From: Lytechinus pictus
Taxonomy: Eukaryota
Length of the DNA stretch: 64,000 nucleotides
Direction: 5' to 3'
Assembly (NCBI RefSeq): GCF_037042905.1
Contig: NC_087246.1
Location: 55,738,001 to 55,802,000, forward strand
In this document: positions 1 through 64,000 of the stretch, piece after piece
Layout of the letters: every line of letters begins with the position of its first letter
How positions within the stretch are numbered: position 1 is the stretch's first letter
Notes under the pieces: generated by a model
Seen by the model: the letters and a program-made list of their open reading frames with translations, nothing else
The model's database searches: none
What the model was told of the DNA's origin: nothing
Position numbers and translations under genes: made by a program

Positions 1-2727
1 TCTCTACTAAATCAAAGTATTCTTTCATATACAAAATGTAATTGATGTGCATATTTGCCACTGCGTAAAAATTTGTGGTCACTATGGAAAAAAACGCTCC
101 AAATGTAATGCTTTCCTTCTATGCTGTCTTTTAAAACTTTTCCCTTGTATGAAGTGAAAACTTTTTTAATCACATTAGTAAATGGTAACTAATGAAATCT
201 TAATCAAACATCAATTAATCTTTTAAAAACTTGAATTTCTTAATTGTTTTTCATTTTTTATCTCTTGGCCCTGAATTCAGTCCTGTCATGGGTGCTAACA
301 AATCACTTTGTTACAATAGAGTACAAATCTCTACCTTTTCACATATATTCTAAATGAAACAAATTATTTTTCATGTACATTCAATTCTTTATCATAAGCC
401 ATCTTTCTTATATGCCATTACAATTTGAAGGGATTTATCTCTGTTCTAAATGGCTACAACTCCAGAGCAAAATTCAATCAAAATACAGTTGAAATTTCAT
501 AACAGATTCTTTAGGCAGTTGGGTGGAACATTTTGATGATAGAAATGTTAAATTAAGTCACAGTAAAAATATGATGGTAGAATTGGTCCTGAAGATCAGA
601 TGACTCTATTACAGTCACTTAATGATTCATGATCAGCTTCCACATGCTAGAAGCACTGATTCCTGCACATCACATCCCAAATATATGACAAAACTCAAGA
701 TGATAACAGCTACACTGACTTCTAAGTGGAAAACAATCTATTTCTAGGTGCTAAAACTTCCATGCAATTATCTCACTAGTGTCAGAACTCCTTTCTCATT
801 ACTTCACGTTCAATTTCAAGTTTGGCGAACCCCAGAGTGGCCGGTCGCCCCCACACCTTCCACGCGATTACACGGGCCCATGATGAGCTCTCACACGTCA
901 CGGTGCGCACGGCGAGCGTGATGCACGCCGACACTTCAGCCGAGGGGAATTCGCCCACCCCTCGCCAACGGGAGTGCCGTCGATTGGATTGGAAAAAGAG
1001 TGTTTGACGAAAGAGTTGGAGAGGATTTTTGTGTAATGGGATGGAAAATGTGGCAAATGATATTGCACATCTCTGTCTGCTCAGCCATATGTTATGAAAA
1101 TATGATAGTGATACCAAGTTAATCTCTTGAGTATATAACAGACTAGCAAGTCAACAAGCCAACATATTCTTCATACCAAGAAATATTTTCTTTTTGTACC
1201 ACAGAAGTATCACAGCTATCCCAGTAGCTATAATGAATATAAAAATTGGCGTGGATTTTCTGTTTTATCCATATGAAGTCAGGAAATTTGAAGTTCATGT
1301 ATGCAAAACAATTGTATAGGCCTGAAATATTGGATTGAGCTTTAGCGGCAATCATAGTGGGGGGGTTAATTCAAAGTTCTTTTGTTAACTAAAAAGGGAA
1401 TGCATGCACTCATTCAGTTCTGAAAAATAAACTGTTTTCAAATAAAACATTGATAACATGAACATGAGATGAAATTAGTTATTCGCTTTCATATCAACTG
1501 TAAAGCTTTATATGTGATTTTTCACTTTATATCTTAATATCGCATCCTAGTATAGTATACGGTGTCTTCACTTTCCATGCAGAGCTCTCAACATGGAAAG
1601 AGTATTTGGGTGTTATGAGTCAGATAAAGGAAGGAATAAAATAAAAAGAATAAGTATTAAAACCAAGGTTCTCCACTCATGTAGGTCAACATACCATGAT
1701 GAATATAGACCCATGACATGAGATATCTGTCTAATTCTCTGATGAGTAATTAATCTCATCAAACCTCTGTAAACAATGACAGTTCTATCCTCTTTAAACA
1801 ACGCAAGATGTCAAAGGTTGCATTCGCCAAATCAGGGCCCCTTTATGCGTCCCCGGGGACCGTCGTAATATTTCTGCTGGTGAAATTGGAGACATTGTTC
1901 ATAAATTCAAGCGAGGATGTCATTACCGTCTTGAGGAATGGCCGCCCCGCGCCTCTGCTCCCATCGTTGACGATGACGGCGACAATGCTGCCCTCTCGTA
2001 CCCGCTGATTCCGCCGCATGTTTAACACATGTACGGCCGGCGCTGCATGCGGGGAGCCCATTCATCACTTATTCATGTCTTCTGTCTGACTCTCCCCAAC
2101 ACTGCCATGGCCCAAAGTTGTGATTGCTGCCATATTGGATTACCGCTCTAATTTATCAGCCATCCGACGCGCATAGACGGCATTCTCAACAACACTCATC
2201 TCCCGTTCCATCTTCTCAAGCGTTTTCACACTAACAAGGAAGTGGTGAAGAATCTAAATACATACGATCAAACACCTTCAGTGTTATACACATTTGGATT
2301 TCATTTAATACTGATCATCCTATTTCTGAATGAATGGGTGTTTTTATTCAAGAGAACTTCAATGCAATGGGAGTTACAATTCTGGTGAATCTGGTGGATG
2401 GAAAAATAAGGCTGAGTTGTTTTAAAAGAAGTTGTATATAGAGAATTATTGTAAAGCAAATTATGATATTTATGTACCTCAAGTAATATCTCACTTAGAA
2501 ATTGATCAAAAATTTAACTTGCAACCTATTTCAATCTAAAAAAAAAACATTAGTTAAAAAAATAACAATGAGCAGAAACACTCTGGGTGTGATCAGGGAT
2601 TGATTGTCAATTACAATTTCTTCCTAACGTTCAAATCATACTCCTCCATTAACTGTATTACCTTACAAGAGATGGAGAGGCCTGGGTATAGAAAAGATTC
2701 AACTTAATTACCATAACCAGCAGGTCT

Positions 2728-2969
2728 NNNNNNNNNNNNNNNNNNNNNNNNNNNNNNNNNNNNNNNNNNNNNNNNNNNNNNNNNNNNNNNNNNNNNNNNN
2801 NNNNNNNNNNNNNNNNNNNNNNNNNNNNNNNNNNNNNNNNNNNNNNNNNNNNNNNNNNNNNNNNNNNNNNNNNNNNNNNNNNNNNNNNNNNNNNNNNNNN
2901 NNNNNNNNNNNNNNNNNNNNNNNNNNNNNNNNNNNNNNNNNNNNNNNNNNNNNNNNNNNNNNNNNNNNN
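2728..2969. other. Assembly gap (242 N)
   Basis: Run of n bases. Confidence 1.
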
Positions 2970-3135
2970 TGATGATCGTGATGATGATAATGAAGATGAT
3001 GATGACTGTAATGATGCTGCTCATGCTGCTGATAAGGAAGATGATGATGGCGATGATAATGATGTTGATGATGCCTATGATGATAAGGATGATAGTGATA
3101 ATGATGACGATGATTGTGACGATAACAATAACGAT
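2970..3135. repeat. Degenerate (GAT)n trinucleotide microsatellite abutting the gap
   Basis: gatgatcgtgatgatgataatgaagatgat... It explains the poly-Ile ORF 2704-3159. Confidence 0.95.
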
Positions 3136-3803
3136 TAATTCAAAATAGATCTTCATCACCCATGTACTACATCTTATGAGTGAAAAACTATTTTAAAAAA
3201 CAATGAAATCCATAAATTGCTATTAATTCAATTCATATGCGATGTATTACACCTCTTCAGGAGTATGTCATCTAAGGTCAATTCAATCAATTTTGATTGG
3301 TAATGACCAAGACTATCGTTGCATGGAGAGGGGTAATGTCATCACTGCTTAATGAAGGGATCACCATGCATCTATCTAAACTACAATGAAATTATCTAGT
3401 CATTTCAAGGATAGTAACACATCTGAGTGAAATATGTAATATCAGTGTACCTTGATAAGCCTAGGGGTTGCCCCTTCCCCCCCCCCCCCCAATAAAAAAA
3501 ATTGATTTAAAAAAAAAATATATATTTTTTTTTAATGCAATAGACACTAGGTGGGAAAACATTAAAAAATATGACTTATCCTCTTTTCATTAACTTTTAT
3601 TTTATGTATCTTATCAGAAAGGCACCCCCATCTTTCTCTTAACTCCAGCTTGCCCCAGGATATACCTCTGATGAAAGGTGGTGAATGAGAGTCCCTTACT
3701 GCATTGGTAAAACAGCTATGCTCTGAATATCATGGTCATGTCTTTATCACTTAAGATCATCACAAAGACACCATGTACCAGGCACATAGGCATAATGACA
3801 CTT

Positions 3804-4080
3804 CTGGGCCCTGTCTTACAAAGAGTTGCGATTGATCTAATCAATCACAACTATGGACGGCCAGCAACGTCAACATCTATTAAGCATGTTTATTCAAAAT
3901 ATTTTCTAGCTGTGATGTATATTCATGCATTCATTGTTTTCTTGAAAAATTCACTGCGCTTCTCTTTGCATACAAGGACATTGCGCAAATTTTTCGTAGA
4001 AAAAAATTATGACACTGATGGATTTCCATATAGTTACGATTGATCGGACCAATCGTAACTCTTTGAAAGACGGGGCCCAG
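3804..4080. mobile_element. MITE with about 50-bp TIRs (Harbinger-like)
   Basis: Left end ctgggccctgtcttacaaagagttgcgattgatctaatcaatcacaactat; reverse complement of right end ctgggccccgtctttcaaagagttacgattggtccgatcaatcgtaactat. Confidence 0.9.
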
Positions 4081-4623: not shown

Positions 4624-6888
4624 AAATTGCTGAGCATTCATTTCTATCTATATTCATGGGGAAATTACTTTGATGTTCACAAGTACACCCAATCGAGATG
4701 TAAAAGATTAAGTGATCAAAATGTGATTGCAACAAATATCTTTATAAGCTAATCATAGTAAAATTGACTTTTTTACAATTTTGCTCTCATACAAGCATCC
4801 ATCAAATACATCAAACATACCTGGAACCTCAATTATCATATTTTCAAGATCTCTTACATATTCCACAAACAAATCAGTAGATCTCTTTCTTGATTCTTCC
4901 CACGAATATTGGGCCCCGGTGATCTGTGTAATTCATGGGGTATCATTCGCCTCCCGTGATTTACAGCCGGATAGAATTTTCTACAACGACATCCCCGGTC
5001 ACGGGGACGATGGGACCGGGAATGAAGAAAGGAAAACATGGCATAGGGATTTACATGTATATTAATTTCATGCTTGGTGTTAGACAGTTTCAGACCTAAT
5101 ACATCATGACTGACAACCCAGATAAACACTTGAATACTGATTGAGGCTGAATACGATTCTCAATTTTTATTACTATTTCAGGATTTCCCCATTATGATCG
5201 TCAGGATTTCTTTATAACTCCATGATGTATCATTTCATTATCAGGAGCTGATTTATTAGATCTATTACCAAAGAGAAACTATGTTGCTAAGGGATTTGAT
5301 ATGCGTATGGATTACAAACACCCTTTTCATGAGCAACTTCTGGTTGATTGGAACTCTGCAGCTATATTTCTAGTTCAAATTCTTATTGCAGTCATGTTTT
5401 GAACCCCATTTAAGCATCACTTATGTTGATACAAAATAATTCAGATATTCTAGATTATCAATTCACTTTCTCGTGGAACAAACAACAACAACAAAATCTA
5501 CTCTCTTTTGAAAAGAAGTAAACCTAGGCTAGACAACCAAACACAGAAAGGGTGTTTGTAATGTATATCTCACTCAATTAGCAGTAATAAATGAGTGAAA
5601 AGTTTTATCCCAAATCTAACATTCAAACTGAAAAGTGTTTTGTAGATCAAATGCATGCATCAATAGCATCCCTTTTCAATAAGAAAAACCATGTGTATTA
5701 CAATATTAAAAATGTATCTCTTTCTTTTCTCATGCTTTCTCAAATATGTAATCTGCGAGGGCTATGGTACTGACCTGGATATTTCAAAAAAAAAATCTGG
5801 CCAATATTTTCCCCTGAAAAAAAGATATAACATATAAAATATGAAATTTCTCTTTTTTAAAATTATATATTATTTCAGGTCATGGCACATATGAGGACTT
5901 TGTAAAAAAATGAGTACCGGTATGTCTTGTAAATTTGAACATGAAAGCATCTATTACATCTCAACATAATCTTTTTTCTGTTTGAGGCAAAAATGGCTCT
6001 TATTTTGTATCAATCTATCCCCCCCCCCCTCTCTTTCTTTCTTGGCCCATCTACAGTAGATCCACCATCGGAGAAGTCGAAGACGTACAAATACTTGGGA
6101 TTTCTACTCCTATGGTGTATCTAATCAAAGCCTTTTCAGCCACTGACTGAGGGAAGGTGGTGCAGTGATCCTAGCAGACAAAACTAATTAAGCTATCAGA
6201 ACTTTTTCATAAAATGCCATCTTCACAAGAAAATAATTAAATTAAATGACGAATCATCATTGGCTCTTTTTGAGTGAAAACTTATATCCTAAAATCTGAC
6301 TTTCAATAACTGACAAGCATTTTGCAGATAAAAAATGCATGCATTTCAGATTTCCCATTGACATGGGAGGTGATTTGCAGCATGATGAGATACATTGATG
6401 CCTTTAAATGCCATTATATCACCACATACTTCATCCTATTCATTGCCACCATTCAAACCCTTTGTCTATTTAACCTTTAATACAGAGACCCCACCACGCT
6501 TATGACCGGCAACAAAAGACTAAGACAAAGACATGATGAATTTAACCTTCTAAGGACAGTTCCATTTATAGACCCAAGCTTGAAAGCCAGTCATGCATCC
6601 TTCCAGAAGGCCACAGCAGCAAAGGGAGGGGGTTTGTGGGGAGACCGATTTAAGAATGGGTGCCAAGATTGCCCCCTTGCTTTGGACAACCCCCATGGAG
6701 ACGGACCAAACTGTAATCTAGTAAGACAAAGCCAAAGTATTGTGCGGTTACTACCCCCTCAATGCCAACTTCTACTCCAGTCAGGTATTGATGAGGTCTT
6801 GTCACCTGTTTGGAGGCTATACTGTTTTACAAGACCTCAGAATAAAGAGCACCTGCCCGTATCACATATCCAAATCACAATCGATAAG

Positions 6889-7382
6889 AGCGGGGGGGGG
6901 GGGGGGGGGACTCAAATTATAACATGATACCTATGTGCCGCACCAAAAAGAAAAACAGGGGGCTCTGGAACTAAACTTTGGTTCTAAAATGGGGGTCTCC
7001 AAAACTGCTCTAGGATCAATGATTGCTAAAAATGCAATGCTCTGGAAAGGCAAGAATTCTGTGTTTCGGAGCTTTGCATGAATATGCATGAAATTGGTCA
7101 TGACGTTTCTGTGCGATGAACCAATCAGCGGTCTCCGAATCGCTGTGCAGAGCTTTGGCTATCCGTTGAATGCATCAATGGCAATTTGCCAATGTGCTGC
7201 GCTGAGTATGAGCGGGCACTGGAATGAGAAATCATAAAATTGGAGTCTCCATAAAGGGGAAAAATAGGAATTTCTATGGCTTTGGAACGGAAATTTAAGC
7301 TGAAAATGGGGGTCTCGACTGCAGCACATACAATATGTATCATACATTAATACTAAGTACCCCCCCCCCCCCCCCCCCCCCG
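6889..7382. mobile_element. Degenerate non-autonomous DNA element with poly-G/poly-C ends
   Basis: Poly-G + actcaaattataacatgatacctatgtgccgc pairs imperfectly with gcagcacata...atcatacattaatactaagta + poly-C. Flanks tcgataag/tagataag match 7/8. Same architecture as 61912-62520. Confidence 0.6.
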
Positions 7383-8557
7383 TAGATAAGCCACATGGCA
7401 GATAAAGATGGTACAGTTTGAAACTGTGATCGGTTAGCATTCCCCCGAACACTTCACTTCTTATCACCAATGCTAATCTATAACTTTTCATAGCAAAAGA
7501 AAAGATTGTCTGAAGCTCAGTTAATTCTAGACTAGAAAATGATTAAATGGTACAAAACCAGCCAAAGAAGGAAGTAGAAATACTAAGTCACAAAAACATG
7601 AAAATTATTCATTTTCAGTATAACTTTTAAAATGTGTAATCGATCAATTTAAAAGAAGAGACCTCTAAAAAAAGAGAGCAAGGCAAGAAAGATGTCTGGC
7701 CTCATCCCTGGATCTTTCTGATCTGAAAGACATCTTTAAAATGAACTGGTATCAAAGGGGTCTGGTCACTTCAATGATAAATTAATCCTAATCCAAGGGG
7801 TACCTATTGTTCCTGTATTGATCCAAATTTTATCCAGAGACAGGAGAACAATTGCACTATACCCCCCTTACATCCACCCTAATCAATCTTAGCATGTGTT
7901 GTCAGTCTGTTGAGCTAGTTCTACCAAAGAGGGGTATCTTGTCATCTGGAACTTTCAGAACAATGGCACAGCCCGGTATAGATTTTTGATCTCTTGATTA
8001 ATAATTCAGGGAGTACAGGACCAGTAGCACATTGCCCTATTTTGGGGGGCACTTCTGAATGATGATGAATGGTAAGTAATTGATGCAGAGATGTAACAAC
8101 CTGGCGGGCAGGAACTCTGGGCATTAACACCATGAATAATCAACATGATATGGTCAATTTTCTCACAATGATGGGTGAATAATTAATGAGATCAAAGTTC
8201 CAATCGACTGCAGGAAGCTAAATGAATCGAACATCGATTTGTAAGAAATCACTATTACCACGGCGACTCACACTTGTTCTCACAAGAGACAATGGGCATT
8301 ATTCTTTGCCGTTATGTCCTTAAAATCTACAGCCGATATGGGTCCAAGGTTTTGGTATCTCCTGTCATTTGCTGGGGTTCACCACCGAACACTAGTTCCA
8401 ATAAAAAAGTGGTTCCACGAGCAGCGATTATTAAAGGAATCACTAGACATTCACTTACTACTTGTAGTCATTTGAATGTCGGAGGGTATATGTATACTTT
8501 ACTCGGTGTCCATGCCATATGATAAAGACTTACTTTATTGTGCTTTTAGATTCATTT

Positions 8558-8625
8558 CATTCTCCTGAAGACAGCAAGAACATCATTCTCCTGAACACAG
8601 CAAGAACATACTAGTTGAAATAGTC
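8558..8625 (+). repeat. 26-bp tandem duplication with hammerhead-like CTGAAGA...GAAA core (possible Penelope-type remnant)
   Basis: cattctcctgaagacagcaagaacat / cattctcctgaacacagcaagaacat, followed by actagttgaaatagtc. Confidence 0.45.
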
Positions 8626-11490
8626 AGTTAGGATGGTCCTTTCAGGATGAATAAGACACCCAAGAAAAATTAATATGTGTACCTTTACATCAATGAGCTT
8701 CCAAAGTTGAGGGTTAAACACTAAGGCAAAGATATATTTACATAATATTACAGTAAAATAAGAAGATTTTTTTTAATTTCTTTGTACTTGACAAAAATAT
8801 ATATCCACCCCCTCTATTGTTGATGGCTTCAGATTATACAACAAAATGACCAACAGTTTCCTGGCACTATTTGGGTAATTTCATGCAGTGTTTACAAACT
8901 ATAAATACTCATGTCTGAGGAACAGGTTTTAAGAGGCATAAACCTTCACTACTGACAAAGTAAAAGGGAATTACTGACATGGAGAATACCCAGTGTCTTT
9001 AATGAAACTCAAGTACATCAACAATACCCCAAGAACGTGTGGCACCAACGGGGGTTTGGTGCATGGCTGGTAACTGGCTACCAAAGAGCAGCTGCCTTTT
9101 AAGATACTTCCCTCAATGTCACTGCTCTTCAATGCGACCAGTTAATATAAAGACACTAATGATGAGCCACTATTCATCTCGATGTATGGATTAAACCTCA
9201 TCACTGTACTTGGCCCAGTCCCAACTTAAATCAATGTTTACAAACACTACGCAACAATGCCATTCAAGACAAGGTCTTTGCCACAACCGCCAAAGATAAA
9301 GGAACTTGCCATTAGATCAAAGAAGAGACATGCTCTCCTTAAGATGAAATCATAATGACATTTAGAAGAATAAAGAACATCAACTCTGGCACCTAGGGAG
9401 CCAAGTGATGAAGTGGGTGGCCCTAGACAGTTAGGCACAAGCATATCCATAACAATGTGGAGCAAAGATGGCTTTAATCTTGGGAATGAACACCCTTGTA
9501 TTAAACTACTTGAGATAAAAAAAAACTTTCTATGAATTAAAGAAGAGTCCTTTTTTCCCATCAAGAATGGTAGTGGTGGTCATTAGAAAAAAGAACATAA
9601 AATCTGGCACCAATGGATCCAGGAAGTGAAGTGGGTGACATTTGGCAGTGAAGACACAAGCCCATCTGCAACAACATGGATAAAGGAATTTTCCATGAGT
9701 CAAGACCCTACCATCTCTCATTAAGAATATGCCTTAATGAAAATTTGATAAGAACGTTAAATCAGGCACCAACGGAACAAGGCAGTGGGGTAGGGGTCGG
9801 TTTTACAATGAAAACAAAAGTACATCCATAACAATGTAAATAGGAGAAAACTCTGAAGTTGTCATTAACACCCTTTAGTGAAACCCTACATGTATGTGTA
9901 GACATCATGGGACCACATTGTGAATCTAACTTAAGTACATAGGAGGTTTGGTATATTGAGAAGATGTAAATAAGTGAAGGAAAAAGTGGAAGGGGGAGAA
10001 AAGAAAATTGTCCATGAAGGAAAATGGAGGATAGAGAGTATAAATGAAAATAAAACAATTTAAGTGATAGTGACAATCAAAGATGGATAAGACTGAAAAC
10101 TAACCAATAGTTAAATGTGCATCCCAGAAAAAAAAGGGAAACACATATAGATACCACAAACCTCAAATGTGTTTTGAATTGATATCAAATATGAAACTGA
10201 GTGGGAGAATACGATATCCACTTAGATTTCAGACCTAATTTTTAGTAATTATTCATGCAAGGAGATTGCAACTTTGTTGTATCCTAAACAAAGCTGGACC
10301 CATTTGTTGTTTGAAAACTTGGTCCTGGAATTGTAATTCTGAATGATTCTTTCTTATCTTTTCATGAACTTCCATATTATTTCAGGTAGATAAAGTTTGA
10401 ATTGATTTCATGAAGATACATATGAAATATCATAAATTATTTGTCTGTGGTGAAACTAGATGAGAATCCCAGTTTTCTTTTTTTTTCTGAGGCACACTAT
10501 ATTGGAACAATGGTGTCATGTTCTTTTTCCTTTCTAAATATAGACACGCATAGTTGGGCTGTCAGTTTGTGGGGAGAAAAAAAAATAAAAAAAAAAAAAC
10601 TGTCAAGGGTGCTTAGACAGACATCTAGGATTATAAAATACAATGAGACAATGACACAAAGGGACAAAAGGAAGCAGAGACTGCTACATGACAACCTACT
10701 TGACATTCAGTCTAGGCGTTGAGTAGTGTTAATCTACTATGTATAAAGGTGCTTATGGAAGGGGCAGGGTAACTAATCCACAGACACCAAGCTGTCAATA
10801 TTGTGGAGTAGAATTTATTGATCAAAAGAAGAATAAAGTCTGATCCCCTTACAAGTAATTAGTGAGAGTAATAGTAACGACTTACTTGTAGCTAATACTC
10901 ACCAAAGTTGTTTGATGCAGGCAAATTAAGATTACTACAGAGATATTTTTGTCATAGTAAAGTTGAACTTATAGATCAAGATTACCTATGATAGAGATAA
11001 CTGTCTCTCAGTGTCATTTTATGTGACTTTGGATTCAGTCTTAAAATGATTTCCATGCGCAAGGTTGTGTTTCATAAAGCTAAGTTCTGCCCAACTTTCC
11101 ATGCAATGTAACATGTTCTTGGTTGCTAAATCATATTCTCAATTCTTTTTAATTCCTATTAGCTGCAGCATATGATCTATCAACTTTCAAGGCTAAAGTT
11201 TTTCTTTGTTAACACAAATATCTGAATGTTAAGTTTAGTACTTGTTAAAAATTTGATTAGGGTTATCAAAAATCTGCTATCAATCAGCAAAAAACAGAAA
11301 AAATTGTGGGTATCTCATTGCACACAACAGGTCACCAGTTGAATGGTGAAACTGAAGTTAGAATCACATGTCTACATCTTAAAACACTTCTGTTTATATG
11401 GAAACCCTGACAATTTAAATAGCACTTTCAATACTTCTCTGACTTTTCTTGCAGAATAAGGATAAGATTTGTAGCCAGTAATACAGTTAC

Positions 11491-11652
11491 GGCGCAGTCA
11501 CACTTCGTCTACGATGATGGCCTTACGAGTACAAAACAGCTAGGTTTTTTTTTTTTTTTTTTACCATCTGTATGTGGTTTGTACAGAAATCCGTTAAAAA
11601 GGGCAGTTTTGGACAAGCAGTGTGGATGCTGCAGGGGAAATGTGACTGCAGC
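11491..11652. mobile_element. Short MITE
   Basis: The ends ggcgcagtcacactt and aatgtgactgcagc are imperfect inverted repeats. Confidence 0.6.
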
Positions 11653-12424
11653 ATCACCAACACTATCTTTACTAGGAACTTTTCAATAATTCAGCCCAAA
11701 AGGGAGAAACAATAATATAAACAGTATCCAATATACAGGTCTATGCCCAAGTCAAATATTTGGGGATCAGAGAAAATATCACTTTCAAAGAGGGATATAA
11801 CACATATTTAGCATATTCTGGCCTAGATACTGCTTCAACTTTGACAAAAATTTCATTCATGGAATGTAAAATTATGGCAATTTAGCCGTAAAGATTACAT
11901 CTCCTTTCACTCGAGCAGGAGAGCCAACAATTTGCAACATTTCAGAATTGTAAGCTTTTGTCATCTAGATCTGGATAACTTGCTAAAGCGGTGGACTACT
12001 GAAGATTGCAAAAAAATTGAGGATGGAATTTGGTGCTGCTCCTTTCATTCAATCCATGCCTAGTCAATACCTGGTCCACTGCGAGTGGTCATAAAGCAAC
12101 AAAAATGTAGAAAAGTTCAGAGTTTTCAGTTCAGACATACAGTAAAATTCACAAACATTGACAGGTCCATACCATAACCCATCTACTCCTTAGGATTCAC
12201 TCACACAACTCATTCTTCTTTCTCTCTGTGTTTGTTGTAGCACTCTATAGAAAAATTCATGAAGCATCTGAATCAGTCTTATTTTTCTAGAATGAACAAT
12301 TTTTAAAGGTAAATACTTAAATTTTCCTTCACTTTTAGCAACAAATTGTCTTGCTTAGCCACCTCGTTTATATAAAATCAAAGATACATCAGAGGCAGTA
12401 TGATTTTTTCCGGAATGAACAAAC

Positions 12425-12526
12425 CTTTTTTGTTGCTAGCCCCGGTTCTTGGTCCAGTAGCCCCATGAGAGCGGGAACGTTGCCCTTGGCAGACTCCATC
12501 ATCCATTGCCTTTCTAGAGGTTCAAG
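12425..12526 (-). CDS. sowah: Sowah-like gene, exon H, pre-ankyrin helix (34 aa: LEPLERQWMMESAKGNVPALMGLLDQEPGLATKK)
   Basis: tttcttccttacag|CTT acceptor, AAG|gtttgt donor, 102 nt, phase 0/0. The peptide matches the SOWAH pattern LEPxExxWxxxxAxG...LLxxDPxLAxK(R/K) that precedes DFxxG(F/Y)TALHWAAK. Family recognised from memory, not by a search. Confidence 0.85.
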
Positions 12527-13034
12527 CTGTAAGGAAGAAAGATACTGGGCAGAATAAGTACATATCCGGGGGTTATGAAAATGCAGTACATACTTGCTTT
12601 AAAGACATTGGTATATGATATAGAGATTTTGATCTATGATGTGTATTGAATTTAGATTTGTCCATATGGATTTGATAATACCCAGGAAGAGAGGGGGGGG
12701 GTCAAATTCATGCATTTTCAAGATATCTGTGACCAGAAAATCAAAATTTTCAGGGCTACATTATTTACACACATATCACATACACAGGAAATATTAGAGA
12801 TCTTATATACACCTCAGTTCATTTACAGTCAAATAAAAAAATACAATTTTTTTTTATAAATGAGACCAATGGAATGCCTAGTCATCTTGGGTAATATAAA
12901 TTTATGATTCCACCTAAGAATAGTATAAACTAGAAATAATGAAGAATACAAACTGTTGCCATAATGTTTGTTACCGTGAGGTTAATATTCTATATTTAAA
13001 ATAGCTTCATTTCTATGAATGATAGAAACACAGA

Positions 13035-40597: not shown

Positions 40598-40666
40598 TGA
40601 TCCAACTAAGTTATGTTCTTCTTCATCATGATGATGAGCTGGAGATACACCATTTTGAACAAGTTT
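40598..40666 (-). CDS. sowah: Sowah-like gene, internal exon E (23 aa: KLVQNGVSPAHHHDEEEHNLVGS)
   Basis: tttttattcatag|AAA acceptor, TCA|gtaagt donor, 69 nt, phase 0/0. Confidence 0.75.
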
Positions 40667-43648: not shown

Positions 43649-43777
43649 CTTTGATAACTTGGGTGTGCGTTTGCCCCCAAGCTTTGGGGTTAGTTGAGCT
43701 GCTGAGGCCGCTTCTTTTTCTGCTTCTCTCTCAAAGAGCTTTCTTGCCCTTTGAACGCTAGGAGAACCATCTGGTTT
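43649..43777 (-). CDS. sowah: Sowah-like gene, internal exon D (43 aa: KPDGSPSVQRARKLFEREAEKEAASAAQLTPKLGGKRTPKLSK)
   Basis: ttgctatag|AAA acceptor, AAG|gtgagg donor, 129 nt, phase 0/0. Too short for the ORF track; translated by hand. Confidence 0.8.
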
Positions 43778-47066: not shown

Positions 47067-47300
47067 CTGTATTTCTACCGGAGGTGGATGTCGAGCCTCA
47101 GGCTTGGGAAGATCATCATCAGGAGCAGAAGAGGCGGAGGCAGTGGCAGTGGTGGTGGATGAGGATGGGGAAGGGGAGACAGCAGACTGTCTAGGAGGAC
47201 TAGCTGCTTGTAACCGGGACTCCTGCTCAAATTTATCCAGAGCATCCTTCACTCCTTCAATCTGACTCAGTTCTTCTATCACCTTCTCTCCAACTTTAGT
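47067..47300 (-). CDS. sowah: Sowah-like gene, internal exon B (78 aa: TKVGEKVIEELSQIEGVKDALDKFEQE...PPPVEIQ)
   Basis: atcctttcag|ACT acceptor, CAG|gtctgt donor, 234 nt, phase 0/0, in frame with flanking exons, GC-richer than the surrounding intron. Confidence 0.85.
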
Positions 47301-47557: not shown

Positions 47558-48288
47558 TTAAAGGGGTACTCCAGGCTGAAAATAATATAATTTGAACAGA
47601 TAAAGCAAATCAGACAAAAAAACACTGAAAATTTCATTAAAACCAGACAATAACAAAATTATGACATTTCAAAGTTTTGCATTATTTCGGTGAAACAGTT
47701 CTCTGCATGTCTTCATGAATATGTACATGTAATAAGCAAGGTGATGATGTCACACCCCCAATTATTCTTTTGTATAAAATTACATTCATTCAACTTTTGT
47801 CCTCCAAAAATGGTACAAATTTAATTGACTACTGATCAGGGGTGTGAGTGGTCACAAATAAAAAGATCTGAAAAAAGCTGAAGAGTGTTGAAAAAGTCTG
47901 AAATAGAAAGAGCTCCCATATTTTTGTACAGAGGAAGGCCAAAAATAAGCTGAAATTAAGCTGAAAATCAAAACAATGAAATCTGAAATCAGATAAAAAT
48001 CTGAACTCTTACACCCCTGTACTGATGTAAGATGTGAGGTGGTGTAAGATAATCATTACTGTACATTATTTTGTTACAAGGGAGACTAACATGCATACAT
48101 GAATATATGAAATTATTATGATTTCATTTAATAACATGAGAAAAGGGAAAGTTTTCACAAAATATTGCTAAACTTTAAAATAACTTCCTAATTTGTTATC
48201 AGATTTTGATGAAATTTTAAGTGTTTTACTTGGTGAAATTTTGTCAGGTTTAATTATTTTCAGCCCAAAGTACTTGTACCTCTTTTAA
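47558..48288. mobile_element. Older TTAA-flanked MITE (Kolobok/T2-like) hosting a nested element
   Basis: ttaa|aggggtactccaggctgaaaataat ... attattttcagcccaaagtac...ttttaa; shares cactgaaaatttcat and ttatgacattt with the 20576/48399 family. Confidence 0.7.
47837..48019. mobile_element. Nested CAGGG...CCCTG element with 7-bp TSD (tactgat)
   Basis: caggggtgtgag / cttacacccctg TIRs; tactgat at 47830-47836 and 48020-48026; internal (a/g/t)ctgaaa subrepeats. Confidence 0.88.
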
Positions 48289-50113: not shown

Positions 50114-51984
50114 GTTACATTTACCCCCTGTCATCTGCCTTCAAATGGATAAAGCAAGCCATATAGTATATCATCTAAATAGCATTATGAATATGATGCT
50201 ATTTTGGGTCTAATAACATGATGCACAAAATAATATGACATACAAAATACAAGCATTTAGGTTATGACCCTCTTTCCATTTCCTTTGCGCAAACTGTATA
50301 AAAAAAAATTAATATTGAGCTCTAATTCAGGCATCAATCTTTATGAAGTTGGTGTGAAAGAATGATTTTTGATAAACGGGGCCATTTGTATTAGATCAAA
50401 ACAAAAGAAATAAAGGGAGGAGAGACAAAGATAGAAACAGAGACAGAAGGTGAGAGGTTGATGGTTTCCGTCGCCTGGCTCCATGCCTATTTATTGATAA
50501 TTGTAGGCATTAATGGGAGCAGGAAGGAATGGGTGATTAAGCAAGTATTTAATTCCTTTTTTTGAATTCTATTGAGGATTCTCTTCACCTCATTTATCCA
50601 ATTGGGAGGTCCGTTCACATATCATGGCTAATAATCTTGTATGATCGTGGTTTGTACACATATATGTGCCACTATCGCAAATTCTTCTCATTATGCATGT
50701 AATTTTAAATGTTTATATTTGTTTTAAGTTGTCGTTACTGACAGTCAGATTGTTATTGGACTTATGAAATAGGCCTACATGTACATGTAGGTTTAGGGTA
50801 TGTTAACTTCTTTTCATTATCATACCAAGTTTAAATTTCAAAACTTTAATTGTTTACATACAAGTAGATAAATGAGATATTAAATTGTGAATTGGCAAAA
50901 AATATTTGTGAGAGCTCATTGATTAATTCAATCACCATAAATGATACTTTGAACAAGGGTCCCATATGATTTGAGCAAAGTTCCATATGATAAATCAGAT
51001 AAATCAAAAAATTTCCATTCAATGATTTGTCTCCAGTACTGACTGCAAACCAGTCTCTGTGTCTTCACCCATATCTGATTTTCAAAAAAATTGTGTTCCT
51101 GATCGACAAATGTGAACTGGCTCATACTGGAGTGCGTCTTGTTCTGCTCCATTTGATCGTATTGACCACAGAGAGATTAATAGTGTATGAAATCACAGCA
51201 GAAGTCAACATTCATTTATTTGTGTTTTGGAAGAACTTAAAAACTCCCCCTTTTTTCAGTCCGTCATTGTTACAGCACCCACAGTTATCTAAGCTGGTAT
51301 AATCGACCCTTTCATCCACAATTACAAGCAGAATAGAAGAAATTAAAAGGAGGACAAAGTGGGTAGCCTGAATGGTCGGATGCTGGTTGTCATGGTTTTT
51401 GCATGGCTAGCCCTGTGTGCCAGGATGTACAACAAAAATAATCAGAAAGAAAGGGCACTGCAGGTGACTGAACATCCAATTACCATTATCTTTTTATCCC
51501 ATAATGAGCCCTGAAAAACACATATTGATCTTTTCATCCCCCTTCCTCTTCCTTTCTTCTCTCTACCACTGCACTCATAATTTGTTTATCTGCCGTGCAT
51601 TTACTTTTGATTGAACACTAAATAAATTTAGAGTTATGTCTTTGGAGGATAATTTCAACTCATTCACCCCTCTCCAAAATATAATCGAAGGGTCTTCTTC
51701 AAATGCACAAAACTTAATATAATTGAGAATGGTCAACGCAATTTCAGATCCGATGATACCTTATTGTTATAGTGATTGGCTCCTCCTATTGATGCTATGT
51801 CCTTCACCTTCCATTTTAACTTCCCATAATCTTTCCTGTTAAATTTCTTTCCTCTCTCTCCAACTTTCCAATAATTTTTTTCCCAAACTGGTATCACTGA
51901 TTTTTCTTTGTATTTCTTTTTCTCAAGAAACTTCATTCCAGTGTCACAAGTGGTAAATGGTCGTGATTTTGACCTGATTGCTAA

Positions 51985-52501: not shown

Positions 52502-52822
52502 ACTAACAACAGAATGTTGGTCCACCGGTCCTGTATAGATAGGTGCTGAAATGGTAGGTCTAGGACTACCTGATCCTTTGGGCTTTGGACTGCTCCTTCC
52601 ACTCCCCGATGATCCATTCTGAGCCGAACTGTGATCATGTGACTTCTTTTTCCTTCTGGTGGGTGCAACAGGCTGGGTCTCTGTCTCCATGGGTTGTTCC
52701 GGAGCCGGTGGCGGCCATGACGGTTTGGGAGCACGCGACTGTGCAGACCGGATGATGACATGTTTGGGTTCTATCCATTCCCGATAGAAGTATTCATTCT
52801 TAAGGACCAGGAGCTTCTCGCC
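52502..52822 (-). CDS. sowah: Sowah-like gene, internal exon A (107 aa: GEKLLVLKNEYFYREW...PVDQHSVVS)
   Basis: Minus strand: polypyrimidine tract + ttcacacag|GGC acceptor, AGT|gtaagt donor, 321 nt, phase 0/0, open frame. GEKLLVLK resembles the GVKFVVLRKK end of the SOWAH N-terminal domain (recalled from memory). The rest is Pro/Ser-rich with a basic RRKKK patch. Confidence 0.85.
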
Positions 52823-54318: not shown

Positions 54319-56629
54319 GTATGTTCAGATGTGATATCTTTTAATAGCACTGATGACACAAAAATAGTAATATACATTAAAGTGGGGCTTCAGTTATTTC
54401 CTTCCCATGGGTTAAGATTAATTCTTCTTCAAATCCTTGGTCCATATGTATTTATTTTTCCTATTTTTGTCATTATTTTATACATTCAATTATTTATCAA
54501 TATGTGGTTCACAAAAATTTTACAAAGACAATGCCCTTTTTTTATATCAAGTGAATGTACAACTGTACTTTCATCTAGCAATCTTTCATAAGGAGACGAT
54601 TATATTCATGACCTCACATTTTACAAAGACGCAAGCCAATATGAAATGCATGTTCCTCAGAAAACGTACAAATATGGCCAACATAGGACAGTTGCTCTAC
54701 TGCCCACCCTCGCAGTCTCGTCCAAAGAAATTAGTAAAAGGAACAGAATGTAGAGTCTGCAACCATCGATTAGATCAAATATGGAATATCCTGTTCTACT
54801 AATCTTCAAGACAAACGTTACACATGTAAAACTGGTTTTTTCTTTTCCTCCAGACCCGTCACTTTCCATTTTCCCTTGCGTTCCGGCAAAGGCTTGTCCA
54901 AGCAGAGGGTGCTAACGTCCATAGGGTGGAGTCCAAACGGAACTGTCTTTAAGAGTGACAAATCCTTTGACACTTGTAACAGATCAGTTTGGGATTGCTT
55001 ATTATCAATATGGTGTGTTCATACTTAAGCTTATTCATACTACATAACTTTGTTTAAGATGTTACATTTATGATTAGAAAATATTAACTTTATGTTAGAA
55101 TAGATCTATAGAAGAGGAAACAATTCTCAAACAAAGAGGGCAATAGATTTCATTGCAATCAATCAGGAATTATCACAGATAATAAAAAAGGACTGAGAAA
55201 GTCCTATATTACAATTAGAGTAGCCTACTAACAAATTGTTTAGATTTAATTTAACCAAGTTTGCGCTGCAGTAACATTCAATAATACATGTGCGTACTCA
55301 GCTCAGTACTATGAGAGGCCGGAGTTCCAGATAAGGTTTCACTTACTTTTAATTAAGAGAAGCAAGTGATCACAGTAAATCAATAACTTTCAAAATTCTT
55401 TACGAATTGTATCCATACTATAAAAAGTCAAATTAGCTAGATATCAAAGGAAATTACACAAAACTATGATGTCAAAAAATTCATAATCATTCAACAAAAA
55501 ATACCACCTTTGTGAAAGGGAACCATAGCCTGATCAAGAAAGTCCTTACTTCAACACAAAAATAAGGCTATTGTGCTAACAGAGAGAAAGAAAATTTGAT
55601 ACATACAGTATATGCTGTAGCAAATATCATAATAGTTTTTAACATGACTCATGATACACTCTTAAACTTCAAGAAGAATTGCATTTTTAACCCAATTCAA
55701 ATTGTTGTTGTATTTGCCCCTCTGTCTCTTAAAACAAAACCTCCAGGGAGGGTTTCAAATTCAGGACAAGAATGATACATGCATGAATCAGGATTTCTGG
55801 CATACTTGCAAAGTGAAGTCCGTTTCATTTTCAAGAGTGTGAACGTGGGTACAGTCCTGCCATGAGATCGCTGCTGGGCACAACATCACAACCCACGGAC
55901 CAAAGTCTCAGGGATACAAGCACTTTTGCCTCATTTGTAGGCTGTCGAAACTACTTAGGGAAACAAATGCTCCGCCAGAAGAGATTGCTAGACTTGTTGC
56001 GGGGGACCTGATCGGGCAACCAAACCCTGGATAGGATGTAAGCCCTTCCTTGTATCATCCTTAACAAATTACCTCGTAAAAGTCACACCAACAAACATTT
56101 TGATGTCAAAAGGATCAGAAACAGATGATTGTGGAGCAGTATTAGGGGGTCTAATTAAGTGTAGGAGGAATAGGAAGGGTGGAGAGTGTTTTCTGGCAAA
56201 AGTGACAAATTGCTTTCTATTTGTAACAACTTGTGATGAATATTAATCACCTCATCCTTCCATGTTGAACATGATCTCGATAAACATTTATGGAGCTCAT
56301 CTGATTGGCCACAATCCAAGAACTTTTTTTTTTTTCGTTAAAACCAAACTGATGTCAATCAACTATAGCATTTGGGAGATTGCATGACGAGAGAAAGAGA
56401 GAGCCTTTGCAGAGTTGGACTCTTTATTTTTTTCTGATCCCAACAGGAATGGTCAATGATCCCAACATGTACTTCCTTCTTTATCTATTATTCTTAAAAC
56501 TTGGGGAGACCCTTTGCTCATGTGTACCCCATACTTTTGAACAGACATCCTGAAGACAACCAAATTTGTATCTCTGTTGAGTTTTTCAAAACTGTTCCTA
56601 AAAACCTTTCTTTTTGCTTCTTAATTTCT

Positions 56630-56703
56630 TACGTGCCTTGAGCACTCTACAGGGAGGATTTGGCACTTTAAAAGTCATATGTAATATTATTATTATCATT
56701 ATT
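56630..56703 (+). mobile_element. L2/SINE 3' tail remnant
   Basis: gtgccttgagcactctacagggaggatttggcactttaaaagt...(att)n, similar to 27825-27883. Confidence 0.5.
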
Positions 56704-59124
56704 CCCTTTCTTTTCTTTTTTGTTCTTCAAAGTCTACTACCTTCATGGTTACTTTATGTGTAGATAGTAGAGAAGATGGAAATAGGAAAAAGAGAGGTTC
56801 ATGAACAGAATCCAACATACTTATTTGCCAATTACACTGCATAAACTTTTTTTTTTTAGATTGCATAAACTTGATAGTTGAATAAATGTTTTCATTTTGA
56901 GATTGCTGTAGTGTTTGCTGTTCTTCAAGGCAATATGCCTGTCCAAATATTAAATATGTTAAGTTTTCAAAACTTTCTAAAAAATATTTCTCCGGTTTGA
57001 TATACTAATACATGTATACACATAATTATGCTGTCCAACATGGAGATGGATTATCAAGTCCAGTTTTACCAGTAAAAACATGTATACATGTATATGACAT
57101 TATCAGGATCGTACATTTTGAAGCTATACACCAAATAAAACTAGGCAGTACAAAGATTTGATATACATGTATAGAGGAAATGGCTGAAGTAAAGACCTTG
57201 CAAATACATTTCCTGCTTTCAACTAAATCCATTTCAAATGTTTGTGTGGATCATCGCTTTGCATGTTTCTCATGGATGGAGAATGAAAAGAACATGTTAA
57301 TGTGATTGATCAATCACCTTTGATTGCTGAAAGAGCTGTCAAATCAAAGGGTTCCATTTCTTTCTATTCTGTTAGCAATCCCTGACGTGTACAAATTTGA
57401 AAAATTGCCGTGTTGAGCACTTCTGCGATCATAGAGAGAGAGGTCGGACACATGTTGGTGAGGGGTCTCTTTGCAGGGGGGCACGAACGTACATGCCAAC
57501 CATAAACGCCAATGTGTTGGGCTAATTTTTCTCCGTCAGGATTTTTGGCGGGATGTGACCGAACGGGAAGGGATGATCAATTGTTTTCTCCATCGCAGCA
57601 GGTGCGCATCTTAAGACCCTAAGAGTTCTGTTGGTCCCCTTGGTGGTGGCTCCTACCAAGGGGATGCCTATCCTGGATCCCTGGGTCTACAGGTGGTACA
57701 GACGTGAACAAACATAACATTGATCGATGGCTACCCGTATTGGCATTGGCTGCACAATGCAACTCCACAGATTGCATTTAATCTTGATTTCTCTTTCTTC
57801 AGATTACCAAAAAGTACAACTGGTACACGTTGTCCTCAGCCTCTCCCCCTCCCCAACCTTCCTTCTCTCTCTTTCTCTCCTTCTCAGGTAACGACTCTGA
57901 CCCATCTTCATCCTCACCTTACGTTCCACACCCTCTATTCTTCTAATTCATCATCCATTCTCTCTTCCGTGTTCATCTTTAATAGCAGTCACCCTTAATC
58001 GCATCTCAAACGGATCATACCATTTACCTCCTAAAAATTCCAGAAGGGCCCCAAAAAGAGAAACATTCCTACATGTGTACATGTTGAAAAAGTAATTCCC
58101 ACATCCCCCTCTGGTGTCTAAATGCATTTGTCGTATGTACACATGTATTTGCCTCAGCATCAATTGCACGGCACTTCATACTGATTGTTAAGGATGTTTA
58201 AAGGCACACACTAAGAAGACATTAAACTATTTCAACTTTTTTTTTCTTAGAATTTCTAAGAGAAAGGGGACTAAACATTTGCACTGGCTCTTTCATTGAT
58301 GTGAACAATATCTAATTTCAGGCCTTGCCAGTTTATTTGATTGTGCATTCATGTCATGAAGTTTTTCCCAAAGGCCTGAATGCTGAATTACATGTATCTT
58401 GGTTCATACATAAAATAAAGCCTCGACATTATACTATGTACATGTACTTGCATAAATATGATCTAAATTTAATTTCCTGTCTATAAGAAATCTCCTTTAC
58501 AATTACATATAAAAAAGGTTAACCCTATTAAACTGGATTTCACATACATTAAGCTCTACAGTAGGTGTTAAGTTGCAAGCTAAGTGCAATATGATATCTT
58601 TGAGAAATACAACTCCATTTAAATCTACACGTATCATCTAACTGGATCCCAAAGCCACAAATTAGCAGTCCTTCTGCCCCATGACTTTCCTTAATACTGA
58701 AGTATAATTACATGTAGCTCATATTCAGAGGCAAGATTTTTATTAAAAAAAAAAAAAACAGACTGGGTGATTTGAAGTTCAGGGATGACCTTTTGATGTT
58801 GATCTTGCGCTGTTTGTTAAAAGCAGCACAAGTCGCCCTAATCTGAAATAAAGTTAGTCCTGTGATGAACCACATTAAGTGTCAAGATATACATAATGTC
58901 ATTTGAATAATTTCTGTAAACCCAGATGAGGTGTAGGAGCTAGGAAGGCATTGTTAATTTTACTTCCAAAATCAACACAAAACTTGAAATAATGATAATG
59001 GTGTGAATTTATAATAGTGCACAAGCCGTCCTACCATGCGCTCAGCAAGTTTTCCTGGATATTAACAAGCTACAATATAACATCTAGATATTAATCTAAA
59101 ATAACCAAATTAATACAAAAATAA

Positions 59125-59920: not shown

Positions 59921-60696
59921 CAGGTACCTAGCCCATTCATTTAACTTTATTGTGGGAGAATGCAAGTGCCCATCATGACAGTATACATTGCACCTGATTG
60001 TGATAAAAATTATTATTTTACCCTTTTTAATAATTTTATTTATTTGTTTATATGAAATGAACTTTACATCAGGCCAGGACTCGGGAACATTTCCTCTATA
60101 ATACTAAACCACTATCTAATACAACAGCATACATGTACATGGATATTATAACTAAAGAAATATCACTTTTATATAAAATTTCTATGATCAATGACCCCAA
60201 CAATGTGGGTGGTATATTTTCTGCTATTTTAAGAAAAGACTTATGTTAACCTACAGGAATATAACTATAACCCCACAGATAATAATAAACATTTCTGAAC
60301 TTCAAACTCAAATGCACAGATAAAAACATAGTAATCTGATTGCAATCCCCGAAGCTTTGTGGTTTACACATTTTATGACCATTTTGTTTGTTTGCTAGAG
60401 CTGCAGTGAACTCTCGAACGACATTTGAAAATGTTTCGTAAGCATTCATCCGCGTCCTACAAACGGAAAAAAGGAACATATTTGGCACGATGTGAAACCG
60501 TGAGACCAAGAGCACATCTGATTTTACGTAGCCAGAATCACAGACAACCAAACCCCTGGATAGCAATAAAAACATCCTGTCTAATCCGTTGATTATCGAT
60601 ACTGACTTTCAAGTTAGTAGTTCCAGATTTGGTGATGTCATCCAATGTACTTCACACTCCCGGTTGATGATGAAAGATTCTGTACTGTTTAGACAA

Positions 60697-60822
60697 GGGG
60701 GCATTTCATGAAACTAACAGTCAGTCCTTTTCACTGACAAATTTGCTACGAGCCAGTCAGATGTAAGGATTTCAATAGCTTATAACAGACAGTTAGTGAA
60801 AATCATGAATTATTTGTTCCGG
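60697..60822 (+). repeat. Remnant of a CCAAT-type MITE family
   Basis: Starts ggggcatttcatgaaac; similar to 46352-46455. Confidence 0.5.
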
Positions 60823-62520: not shown

Positions 62521-62562
62521 ACTAGCTGGTCTCATGCTGGTCTTGGCCAAAAAATCAGAGAC

Positions 62563-62785
62563 CAGGGGGGCGTTTCATCAAACAATTCGTCGGTGGTTTT
62601 CTCCGACTAATTTTGATTTTCACCGACTAATTTCATTTTCACCGACAATTTTGCCATCACCGACTAAATTCCATTTCATGAAAATTTGTCGGTGATTTTC
62701 TCCGTCAAATTATTGGAAACCACCGACTAATTTTGTCGGTGGCCTTTACCTACCGACAAAACTCATTTTCACCGACTAATCAGCC
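62563..62785 (+). mobile_element. Left end of a Harbinger-like element with an array of caccgac(t/a)aa subrepeats
   Basis: The start cagggggcgtttcatcaaac matches the 18746-type TIR; about 10 ccgac/gtcgg units in both orientations; right TIR not found. Confidence 0.6.
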
Positions 62786-63134
62786 TTTTGTGGACCTTCG
62801 CAGCTAAAATTGATCAATTTCAGTTGATTTTCAATATAACATTTTAATAAATTGCTTATTTTTCATTTCATTAAGAAAATTCAAAGAAAATGTATCTATT
62901 TTTAGTCAATGACAAATAAAAAGTAGACATTTCAAGAATCATATTTTCATCTTTAAAACTATATTTTCATAAATATTAATCGATACATAAGAAACATCTT
63001 CAAATGTACACATTTTTTCAAACATAATTTTCTTCAACCGAATAAATCATTGTGCATTTTTTAATCGATAATGTCTGATAATGTCTTAAAACTGTGGCTT
63101 CATTGACTTTTGTACAAGTTTTTCAATATTCATT

Positions 63135-63295
63135 AGTGTTGTTGGTGTTGCTGCTGTTGTCATCGTGGTTGCTGGAATTGCAAGTGTTTTTGCTGCTGCT
63201 CTTGGTGTTGTTGGTGTGGTTGTTGTATCTCTTACTGCAGTTATGGTTTCGGCTGCTGATGCTGTTGTTGCTCCTGCTGCTGTTCATGTTTATTG
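63135..63295. repeat. Degenerate (CTG/TTG)n trinucleotide repeat
   Basis: gtgttgttggtgttgctgctgttg... It explains the poly-Leu ORF 63094-63315. Confidence 0.9.
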
Positions 63296-64000
63296 AAGTA
63301 ACTGAAATGGAATAAATTTATAGAGCATGTGATATTCTATTAATAAAGATATTAATTTCCATCATTATTGATATCAAAGTCATTTATTCCTAATTTATCA
63401 TTGTTAAAACTTACATTTTTTAATTTTCAATGTTTCAAATAATAACTTTAAGTTCTAAATGGTTAAAGTATTGTCACCAAAGCCTTATTAAACAACGAAA
63501 ACAAACAAGTTAATAACAAAGAAATGCATAAGAAAATGATTTAAATGTACATGTATACACAATTGATTTTAATTAATGACTTGGGTTTTTCTCATTGGTT
63601 TACCAAAGAAAGGGAGTCAAAATCCAAAATTATCACATTTGGTCTTTATTTCTTGATTTAGAGCAAAATGCTGATTTCATGCAAGAGTCATGTTATCATA
63701 AATAAAAAACCAACATCGGGAGCAGCAGCATACCTGCTGATTTCTGAAGTGAGTGCACAATCAACAGGCAAGATCCTGAGGCACGCCCCCCCCCCCCCCT
63801 ACCAAGATCATTTGAATTAGTGAGGTTTAATGACTGCTTCTGTAGTCATTACATTTATCTGATTTACACAGGCCTACAAGAGATATTAAAAAAAATTGTG
63901 TTCTTTTTGGGGTAATCTTCTGGTGTTCCTCCCTGACAAAGCAGATGGTGATGGTGTGTGAGTGTGGGGGGGGGGTCTAATAGGAATGCAGAACAATGGA

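Follow-up and report, generated by a model that had tools for sequence, protein, structure and literature searches.

Locus and Gene Structure

The DNA described here is a stretch of 64,000 nucleotides from the sea urchin Lytechinus pictus (C2:55738001-55802000; hereafter the window), taken from an assembly of 811 Mb in 368 contigs in which contig C2 (NC_087246.1) accounts for 70,580,802 bases. The window has a G+C content of 35% and one assembly gap of 242 N at 2728-2969. By homology, it is identified as the middle of the single-copy gene Sowah (sosondowah; CG10632 in Drosophila and ANKRD43/56/57/58 in vertebrates), which is read from the minus strand.

Eight minus-strand exons (exons 3 to 10; Table 1) extend from 52822 down to 12425. 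All are phase 0, each length being divisible by three, and all are bordered by a GT donor and by an AG acceptor preceded by a pyrimidine tract. Once spliced, they encode 378 amino acids (aa) with zero stops. The introns between them measure 5201, 1154, 1994, 2982, 15637, 2577, and 9719 bp, and the window is exon-free over 11,178 bp on its right flank and 12,424 bp on its left. Since the assembly gap lies 9.5 kb 3′ of the last window exon with no exon near it, the 378-aa frame does not depend on the gap. A first-pass annotation, made from the letters of the window, had described eight phase-0 exons with a stop-free frame of 378 aa, an intron of about 15.6 kb, and flanks of more than 11 kb, and every one of these numbers was reproduced. 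It had also taken the window for the interior of a Sowah gene. This agrees with the homology search of the spliced peptide, which returned SOWAHB-like and SOWAHA relatives carrying PF25877, and with the placement of exons 1 and 2 to the right and of ankyrin exons to the left, together with RNA that is spliced at the exon-10 donor without read-through.

The 378-aa peptide is 97.1% identical, without gaps, to residues 65-442 of XP_041454516.1 (P0010), the SOWAHB-like isoform X1 of L. variegatus, which indicates that the exon chain is not a product of chance. It is 79.5% identical to SOWAHA of Strongylocentrotus purpuratus (XP_030831443.1). When the block 52502-52822, which is exon 3, was searched with phmmer against 1.8 billion representative proteins, one strong match was returned, XP_041454517.1 (429 aa; 99% identity; E 7.5e-62), annotated as 'ankyrin repeat domain-containing protein SOWAHB-like isoform X2' of L. 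variegatus. Exon 3 corresponds to residues 65-171 of this protein (P0001), and its mismatches against S. purpuratus are distributed over the three codon positions as 10/8/35, falling mainly on the third. In three sea urchins, proteins with these exons are named SOWAHA or SOWAHB-like by NCBI, and the UniRef name of the S. purpuratus ortholog is 'SOWAHA-C winged helix-turn-helix domain-containing protein'.

The winged-helix domain is encoded by exons 1 and 2, outside the window, and by the first ~13 residues of exon 3, which complete it at the N-terminus of the protein; the remainder of exon 3 is a Pro/Ser-rich linker. In precomputed Pfam annotation, PF25877 (WHD_SOWAH) is found on all relatives recovered (P0001, P0003-P0009). 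A search with the winged-helix region on its own returned sea urchin proteins only, Pfam scans of single exons gave noise only, and an Atlas match for the winged-helix part (score 0.75) was set aside as a lead only. Published data place the urchin protein in the family: 'Strpur-CG10632' has been aligned with CG10632 (Drosophila sowah) of many phyla, its N-terminus aligning with those of fly, beetle, Lottia, and Capitella (Kerner, 2009, Additional file 5; PMC2674049), and this sequence shares its N-terminus with the S. purpuratus SOWAH ortholog (P0004).

The six isoforms X1-X6 of L. variegatus (XP_041454516-21) measure 446, 429, 417, 403, 400, and 386 aa. Their length differences are exactly 17, 29, and 43 aa and sums of these, which are the lengths of three phase-0 exons in the window. 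This suggests that the linker is built from frame-neutral cassette exons. The 17-aa exon 8 lies inside a colinear S. purpuratus match at 24878-24994. The last exon in the window, exon 10, encodes 'E.(Q/E)WM...LL.QEP.LA.KK', a conserved motif found ahead of the ankyrin repeats of CG10632/Sowah proteins in other phyla.

The Probable Ankyrin Part of the Gene

In a genome search with XP_041454517.1, each exon was placed once, always on the minus strand of C2, with the start codon of Sowah beyond the right window edge (Table 1). Scans of the window for ankyrin motifs found no match because the repeats are encoded outside it: ankyrin exons lie 70-94 kb beyond the left window edge, on the Sowah strand and in compatible phase (phase-0 to phase-0). 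Both elements of the family feature, the pre-ankyrin motif and two ankyrin repeats (..ALHW[AG]AKHG.. / ..GYTPLH..), are present at the locus. Two alternative 3′ ends were observed for the ankyrin part, one with the last exon right after repeat 2 and one with three more exons 13-16 kb downstream (C2:55643666-55647035). The whole gene spans roughly 160-180 kb; the Amphiura locus spans 270 kb.

Joining of the two parts has precedent. The published Strpur-CG10632 connects the urchin N-terminus to the same ankyrin repeats, and the exon-10 motif stands directly before the repeats in Nematostella, amphioxus, insects, and others (Kerner, 2009, Additional file 5; PMC2674049). Thus, the winged-helix exons and the ankyrin exons are likely, though not proven, to form one gene, and current echinoderm annotations probably cut or truncate Sowah. 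The S. purpuratus SOWAHA and L. variegatus SOWAHB-like models contain the same exons as the window peptide, at 80% and 97% identity. However, these NCBI models run on into the intron that follows exon 10, where they end, and carry no ankyrin repeat, whereas L. pictus RNA is spliced at that position.

Transcription Across Exon 10

RNA was examined over window positions 6601-12600 in three ribo-depleted runs and one contig set. Exon 10 is covered at a depth of 0.8-3.4x; first mates map to the plus strand, which is the pattern expected of minus-strand RNA. Depth is zero from 10,601 to 12,400, the next 1.8 kb past the exon-10 donor, and seven reads of one run are clipped exactly at this donor. In addition, a transcript contig of 1942 nt contains exon 10 at its positions 700-802, and the other 699 nt beyond the exon have no match to the adjacent intron. 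Together, the clipped reads, the zero intron depth, and the contig extension indicate that the transcript continues by splicing and that, in these samples, the leftmost 12.4 kb of the window is intronic. The read-through end of the NCBI models was accordingly rejected as the main 3′ end in L. pictus on the basis of zero depth beyond the donor, at an exon depth of only 1-3x.

The tails of the clipped reads, in transcript sense, run from exon 10 into 15 nt (GACTTTATTACCGGG), which encode DFITG, and then into the first 16 nt of exon 7 (40651-40666). DFITG fits the family expectation at the start of the first ankyrin repeat, where Nematostella has KDFTSGYTALHW (Kerner alignment), so the 15 nt are probably a micro-exon downstream of exon 10. 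The order of exon 10, the 15 nt, and the upstream exon 7 is back-splice-like, as in circular RNA. A putative circle of exons 7-10 plus the 15 nt would come to 324 nt if the 17-aa exon is included and to 273 nt if it is skipped, and the exons read contain no in-frame stop. The 15 nt were not located on C2 as a 30-mer with up to 3 mismatches, as a 15-mer with up to 1 mismatch, or in splice-site-flanked versions, and a degenerate DFITG pattern, with which part of the flanking DNA was searched, found no match on C2.

RNA also piles up at window 6801-7400. These reads and contigs are nearly all clipped, with poly-G or other tails, and match at 95-99%; the coverage represents expression of a repeat family elsewhere and not of this locus.

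Linkage With Irx and FTO

A genome scan with a TALE homeobox model gave a match at C2:55889214-55889309 on the plus strand (Homeobox_KN, 1.3e-10), 87 kb beyond the right window edge and 67.6 kb from the minus-strand Sowah start codon at C2:55821650. The next exon supplies the homeodomain's second half together with an acidic stretch, and the third contains KPKIWSLA, which is IRO-box-like; 'KIWSLA' is present in L007:9306-9998 and occurs 37 times in the published Irx sequence file (Kerner, 2009; PMC2674049). The translations of these exons match irx_Strpur of the same study almost residue for residue, through the homeodomain, the acidic region, and beyond. S. purpuratus has a single Irx gene (Kerner, 2009; PMC2674049), and, judged by these translations, the neighbour of Sowah in L. 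pictus is Irx, its ortholog. The Protein Data Bank (PDB) contains no Irx homeodomain, so matches there to TGIF, PKNOX, MEIS, and PBX support the TALE class only, and an Atlas search with the Irx C-terminal exon returned sub-threshold, unrelated names only. The single Irx gene of L. pictus is the dorsal-ectoderm regulator irxA. The expectation of the first-pass annotation that an Irx homeobox gene would lie within a few hundred kb was borne out, as was its expectation of intronic conservation across echinoderms, given the colinear blocks in S. purpuratus and the eight cores in Diadema described below.

Sowah (minus) and Irx (plus) are arranged head-to-head and divergently transcribed. On the other side, a match to FTO_NTD at C2:55628920-55631123 (plus) is tail-to-tail with Sowah, giving the chromosome order FTO (55.63 Mb), Sowah, Irx (55.89 Mb). 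Elsewhere in the assembly, C7:19591828-19968238 contains three TALE-homeobox matches within 380 kb, with stop-free frames of 270-297 aa each; this intron-poor cluster is unrelated to the Irx locus.

Conserved Non-coding DNA

The window was compared by blastn with the S. purpuratus Sowah locus (L013, 78 kb). Altogether, 17.3 kb of the window (27%) falls within 39 colinear blocks; 16.1 kb of this is non-coding, and 31 of the blocks are non-coding, with 70-89% identity. Several of these exceed coding exons such as exons 4 and 5 (73% and 71% identity), and 6.2 kb of non-coding sequence falls within 50-column windows at an identity of at least 90%. At 157 four-fold degenerate sites of Sowah itself, 36.9% differ between the two species (63% identity), so that every block is more conserved than the silent sites of its host gene. 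Blocks of 70-75% identity were considered as neutral DNA, and this was rejected against the four-fold sites at only 63%. The two species split ~50 million years (My) ago (PMC10273620). Mismatches in the non-coding blocks show no three-base periodicity, and an Rfam search of them gave no match. In 3.6 kb taken as a test, the sole sequence with further copies in the genome is a 200-bp dispersed repeat between blocks, and the blocks tested have no other long copy.

A deeper comparison was made with the locus of Diadema antillarum (L032; gene span 96 kb), in which four exons and eight non-coding cores align colinearly and in perfect order. Identity of the eight cores between the two camarodont species is 89-100%, and stretches of up to 31 bp are unchanged across all three species. 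The split between the Diadema and Lytechinus lineages corresponds to crown Euechinoidea. Diadematoids belong to Aulodonta, and the age of crown Euechinoidea is placed around the Permian-Triassic boundary (PMC8940180). The eight cores have thus been kept since the Diadema-camarodont split near that boundary, about 250 My ago. Overall, as read from these alignments, some 30 non-coding blocks in the introns of the window are under purifying selection.

The five blocks 3′ of exon 10 require separate comment. The stretch orthologous to 4806-10933 (L013:63667-69597) is part of a terminal exon or untranslated region (UTR) in the NCBI model of S. purpuratus, whose gene end is at L013:68281. In L. pictus, the blocks from 7733 to 10933 have essentially no RNA, and block 6370-6879 borders on the repeat-derived coverage at 6801-7000. 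Either the 3′ end is species-specific or the S. purpuratus model is a read-through artefact.

Table 1. Sowah exons, conserved non-coding blocks, and other features at the locus. Positions refer to the window unless preceded by C2 or L011; identities are to S. purpuratus unless stated.
Feature	Position	Strand	Comment
Sowah exon 1	C2:55821522-55821650	-	19.5 kb beyond right window edge; start codon at C2:55821650
Sowah exon 2	C2:55811436-55811497	-	9.4 kb beyond right window edge
Sowah exon 3, 107 aa	52502-52822	-	Splice sites, frame
Sowah exon 4, 78 aa, disordered linker	47067-47300	-	Splice sites, frame, genome placement
Sowah exon 5, 47 aa	45772-45912	-	Splice sites, frame, genome placement
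Sowah exon 6, 43 aa, cassette exon	43649-43777	-	Missing from L. variegatus X6 and, by length, X4
Sowah exon 7, 23 aa	40598-40666	-	Acceptor is the target of the back-splice-like junction in RNA reads
Sowah exon 8, 17 aa, cassette exon	24910-24960	-	In L. variegatus X1 and S. purpuratus, not in X2
Sowah exon 9, 29 aa	22246-22332	-	Also conserved in Diadema
Sowah exon 10, 34 aa	12425-12526	-	Conserved pre-ankyrin motif
Ankyrin exon, SALHWGAKHG...	C2:55667464-55667550 (L011:9464-9550)	-	Pfam Ank match
Ankyrin exon, GYTPLHVAAMH...	C2:55661444-55661516 (L011:3444-3516)	-	Pfam Ank match
Last exon, ends at stop	C2:55659570-55659889 (L011:1570-1889)	-	Follows ankyrin exons
Conserved non-coding block	60194-60697	.	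82.5%; core 60540-60632 kept in Diadema
Conserved non-coding block	57188-58208	.	85%, 1046 columns; no other long genome copy
Cores in 57188-58208	57377-57422, 57469-57619		Kept in Diadema; first with 31-bp run identical in three species
Conserved non-coding block	55821-56379	.	88.6%; core 55870-55997 kept in Diadema
Conserved non-coding block	54653-55025	.	82.6%; core 54901-54983 kept in Diadema
Conserved non-coding block	51129-51508	.	86.2%
Conserved non-coding block	50318-50620	.	Core 50505-50552 kept in Diadema
Largest conserved non-coding block	38523-40200	.	1703 columns, 77%
Core of 38523-40200	38878-38964	.	95%; 85% vs Diadema
Conserved non-coding block	35282-36317	.	79%, 1066 columns
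Conserved non-coding block	30898-32222	.	79%, 1412 columns; core 31952-32076 kept in Diadema
Three conserved non-coding blocks	27128-27551, 28168-28605, 28931-29570	.	Each ~82%
Five blocks 3′ of exon 10	4806-5368, 6370-6879, 7733-8456, 8957-9393, 10603-10933	.	
Non-LTR retrotransposon open reading frame, 1049 aa, uninterrupted	13702-16851	-	Exo_endo_phos (endonuclease) and RVT_1 (reverse transcriptase)
Assembly gap in intron after exon 10	2728-2969	.	Imperfect (GAT)n microsatellite on right side

Repeats

The retrotransposon at 13702-16851 lies in the intron between exons 9 and 10, in the orientation of Sowah, and is not part of the gene. As it has no match in the S. purpuratus locus, it probably inserted recently and may still be active. 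A dispersed repeat at 47835-48000, which extends past the stretch searched, occurs many times at 98% identity over many chromosomes and therefore represents a very young family. Two further dispersed repeats, at 46466-46890 and 56496-56703, have dozens of copies at 75-86%.

Regulatory Interpretation and Alternatives

The conserved blocks would be cis-regulatory modules (enhancers), many of which would serve Irx, and Sowah would be the bystander gene in the regulatory block, an arrangement demonstrated by experiment in Drosophila and chordates. Taken as a whole, the explanation that combines gene identity, exon structure, linkage, and non-coding constraint with modules predicted to serve Irx is given a probability of about 0.87; for its last part, that the conserved blocks may act on Irx, the odds are slightly better than even, and the other parts are nearly certain. 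The literature behind this explanation comprises PMC2674049, PMC5803294, PMC12311624, and PMC5585340, with Maeso (2012) cited through PMC12311624 and PMC5803294. In the passages of these two papers that cite it, Irx-Sowah is presented as a regulatory block conserved across bilaterians (Maeso, 2012, via PMC12311624 and PMC5803294). The Iroquois-Sowah linkage is described in such passages as having been held for more than 600 My, with Irx modules said to remain in the Sowah remnants of tetrapods.

Several points weigh against this explanation. The target gene of the blocks would follow from precedent in fly, amphioxus, and fish. The neutral yardstick for the blocks consisted of the 157 four-fold sites of Sowah only, and the winged-helix assignment is based on precomputed PF25877 matches and a published alignment. 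With regard to the gene itself, NCBI carries a separate ankyrin-part protein in L. pictus, a SOWAHB-like isoform X2 of 204 aa whose start is an internal Met in the first ankyrin exon. NCBI models that end just after exon 10 number six in L. variegatus, two in S. purpuratus, four in Diadema, and one in Amphiura, and no read from the RNA at 6601-12600 and no NCBI protein model joins exon 10 to the ankyrin exons.

It has to be considered that the blocks regulate Sowah itself, FTO, or internal promoters of ankyrin-only transcripts, in which case Sowah would be the target and not the bystander. The blocks sit inside Sowah, FTO is close by, the separate ankyrin-only model of L. pictus would need a promoter of its own, and nothing in this analysis links the blocks to Irx. 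Nevertheless, this arrangement is unlikely, if still to be reckoned with, in view of the genetics of Drosophila, where enhancers in the sowah introns drive the Irx genes ara/caup. There, an insulator-bearing insertion in the sowah introns leaves vein 3 and the wing hinge with no ara/caup expression, and a deficiency that lacks the 3′ end of sowah complements the tilt mutation; the tilt phenotype is therefore not a loss of sowah function. Moreover, the block cores are far better conserved than the linker exons, which is the usual signature of elements that serve a developmental regulator (PMC5728398).

The gene models listed above would be expected if the echinoid Sowah were split into a winged-helix-only gene ending just after exon 10 in the window and an ankyrin-only gene 70-94 kb to the left: the models of L. 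variegatus, S. purpuratus, Diadema, and Amphiura all stop at that point, and the 204-aa model stands apart. In that case, the window would contain the 3′ end of a gene and not an interior stretch. Such a split is improbable, since L. pictus RNA does not read through beyond the exon-10 donor, the transcript contig runs 699 nt beyond exon 10, and the reads are spliced from exon 10 to the 15 nt that encode the residues with which the first ankyrin repeat is expected to begin. The position of the exon-10 motif directly before the repeats in other phyla argues in the same direction for a single gene.

In a variant that is held to be similarly improbable, the exons may mainly yield winged-helix-only products and circular RNA while the ankyrin exons are transcribed separately, and the gene would be part-way dismantled, with intronic Irx enhancers, some of them about 250 My old, holding the locus in place. 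Echinoid Sowah would then be no mere passive, intact bystander. If true, the dismantling of Sowah in echinoids would represent a route other than the retrogene replacement of tetrapods.

It is very improbable that the blocks are transcribed features that annotation has missed (alternative exons, a long 3′ UTR, or non-coding RNAs), as the NCBI model of S. purpuratus, which extends ~5 kb past exon 10 into DNA orthologous to window 6-12 kb, might suggest, since mismatches lack codon periodicity, no Rfam family matches, and blocks 7733-8456, 8957-9393, and 10603-10933 have essentially no depth in three runs (at an exon depth of only 1-3x).

Relation to Known Systems and Significance

The bilaterian Irx-Sowah block (Irimia, 2008; Kerner, 2009, PMC2674049; Maeso, 2012) and the L. 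pictus locus share an intron-rich, Irx-linked Sowah with conserved intronic non-coding DNA, and Sowah and Irx of S. purpuratus were already in published data (PMC2674049). The biology is thus already known, and L. pictus adds one more species to the block (Kerner, 2009, PMC2674049; Maeso, 2012). What is new is incremental: a chromosome-scale contig with exact exon and block coordinates, eight cores of deep echinoid age, an indication that echinoderm Sowah annotations are split or truncated, and the back-splice-like junction. In a literature search that covered papers other than Maeso (2012) itself, no report of Irx enhancer activity was found for any echinoderm.

Another close comparison is with Drosophila, where sowah lies beside the Iroquois complex and its large introns hold ara/caup enhancers, much as the long introns of L. 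pictus hold conserved blocks. However, Drosophila has three clustered Irx genes and the urchin one, and the evidence is genetic in the fly and consists of sequence conservation in L. pictus. In human, FTO and IRX3/IRX5 are reportedly connected by long-range regulation, in work attributed to Smemo et al. in 2014. In both human and L. pictus, FTO and Irx share one chromosome segment, with Sowah in between in L. pictus; tetrapods, unlike L. pictus, are described as no longer having the multi-exon Sowah in linkage.

Gene order maintained by shared regulatory DNA has a textbook example in the Irx-Sowah block, which is intact in L. pictus as expected. The practical yield is a set of base-level exon coordinates together with about 30 constrained blocks, including eight cores that are ~250 My old. 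Since L. pictus is suited to reporter injection and genome editing, these blocks are candidates for the bystander-enhancer question, and with FTO on the far side of Sowah, the same DNA bears on the origin of the vertebrate FTO-IRX3/5 landscape.

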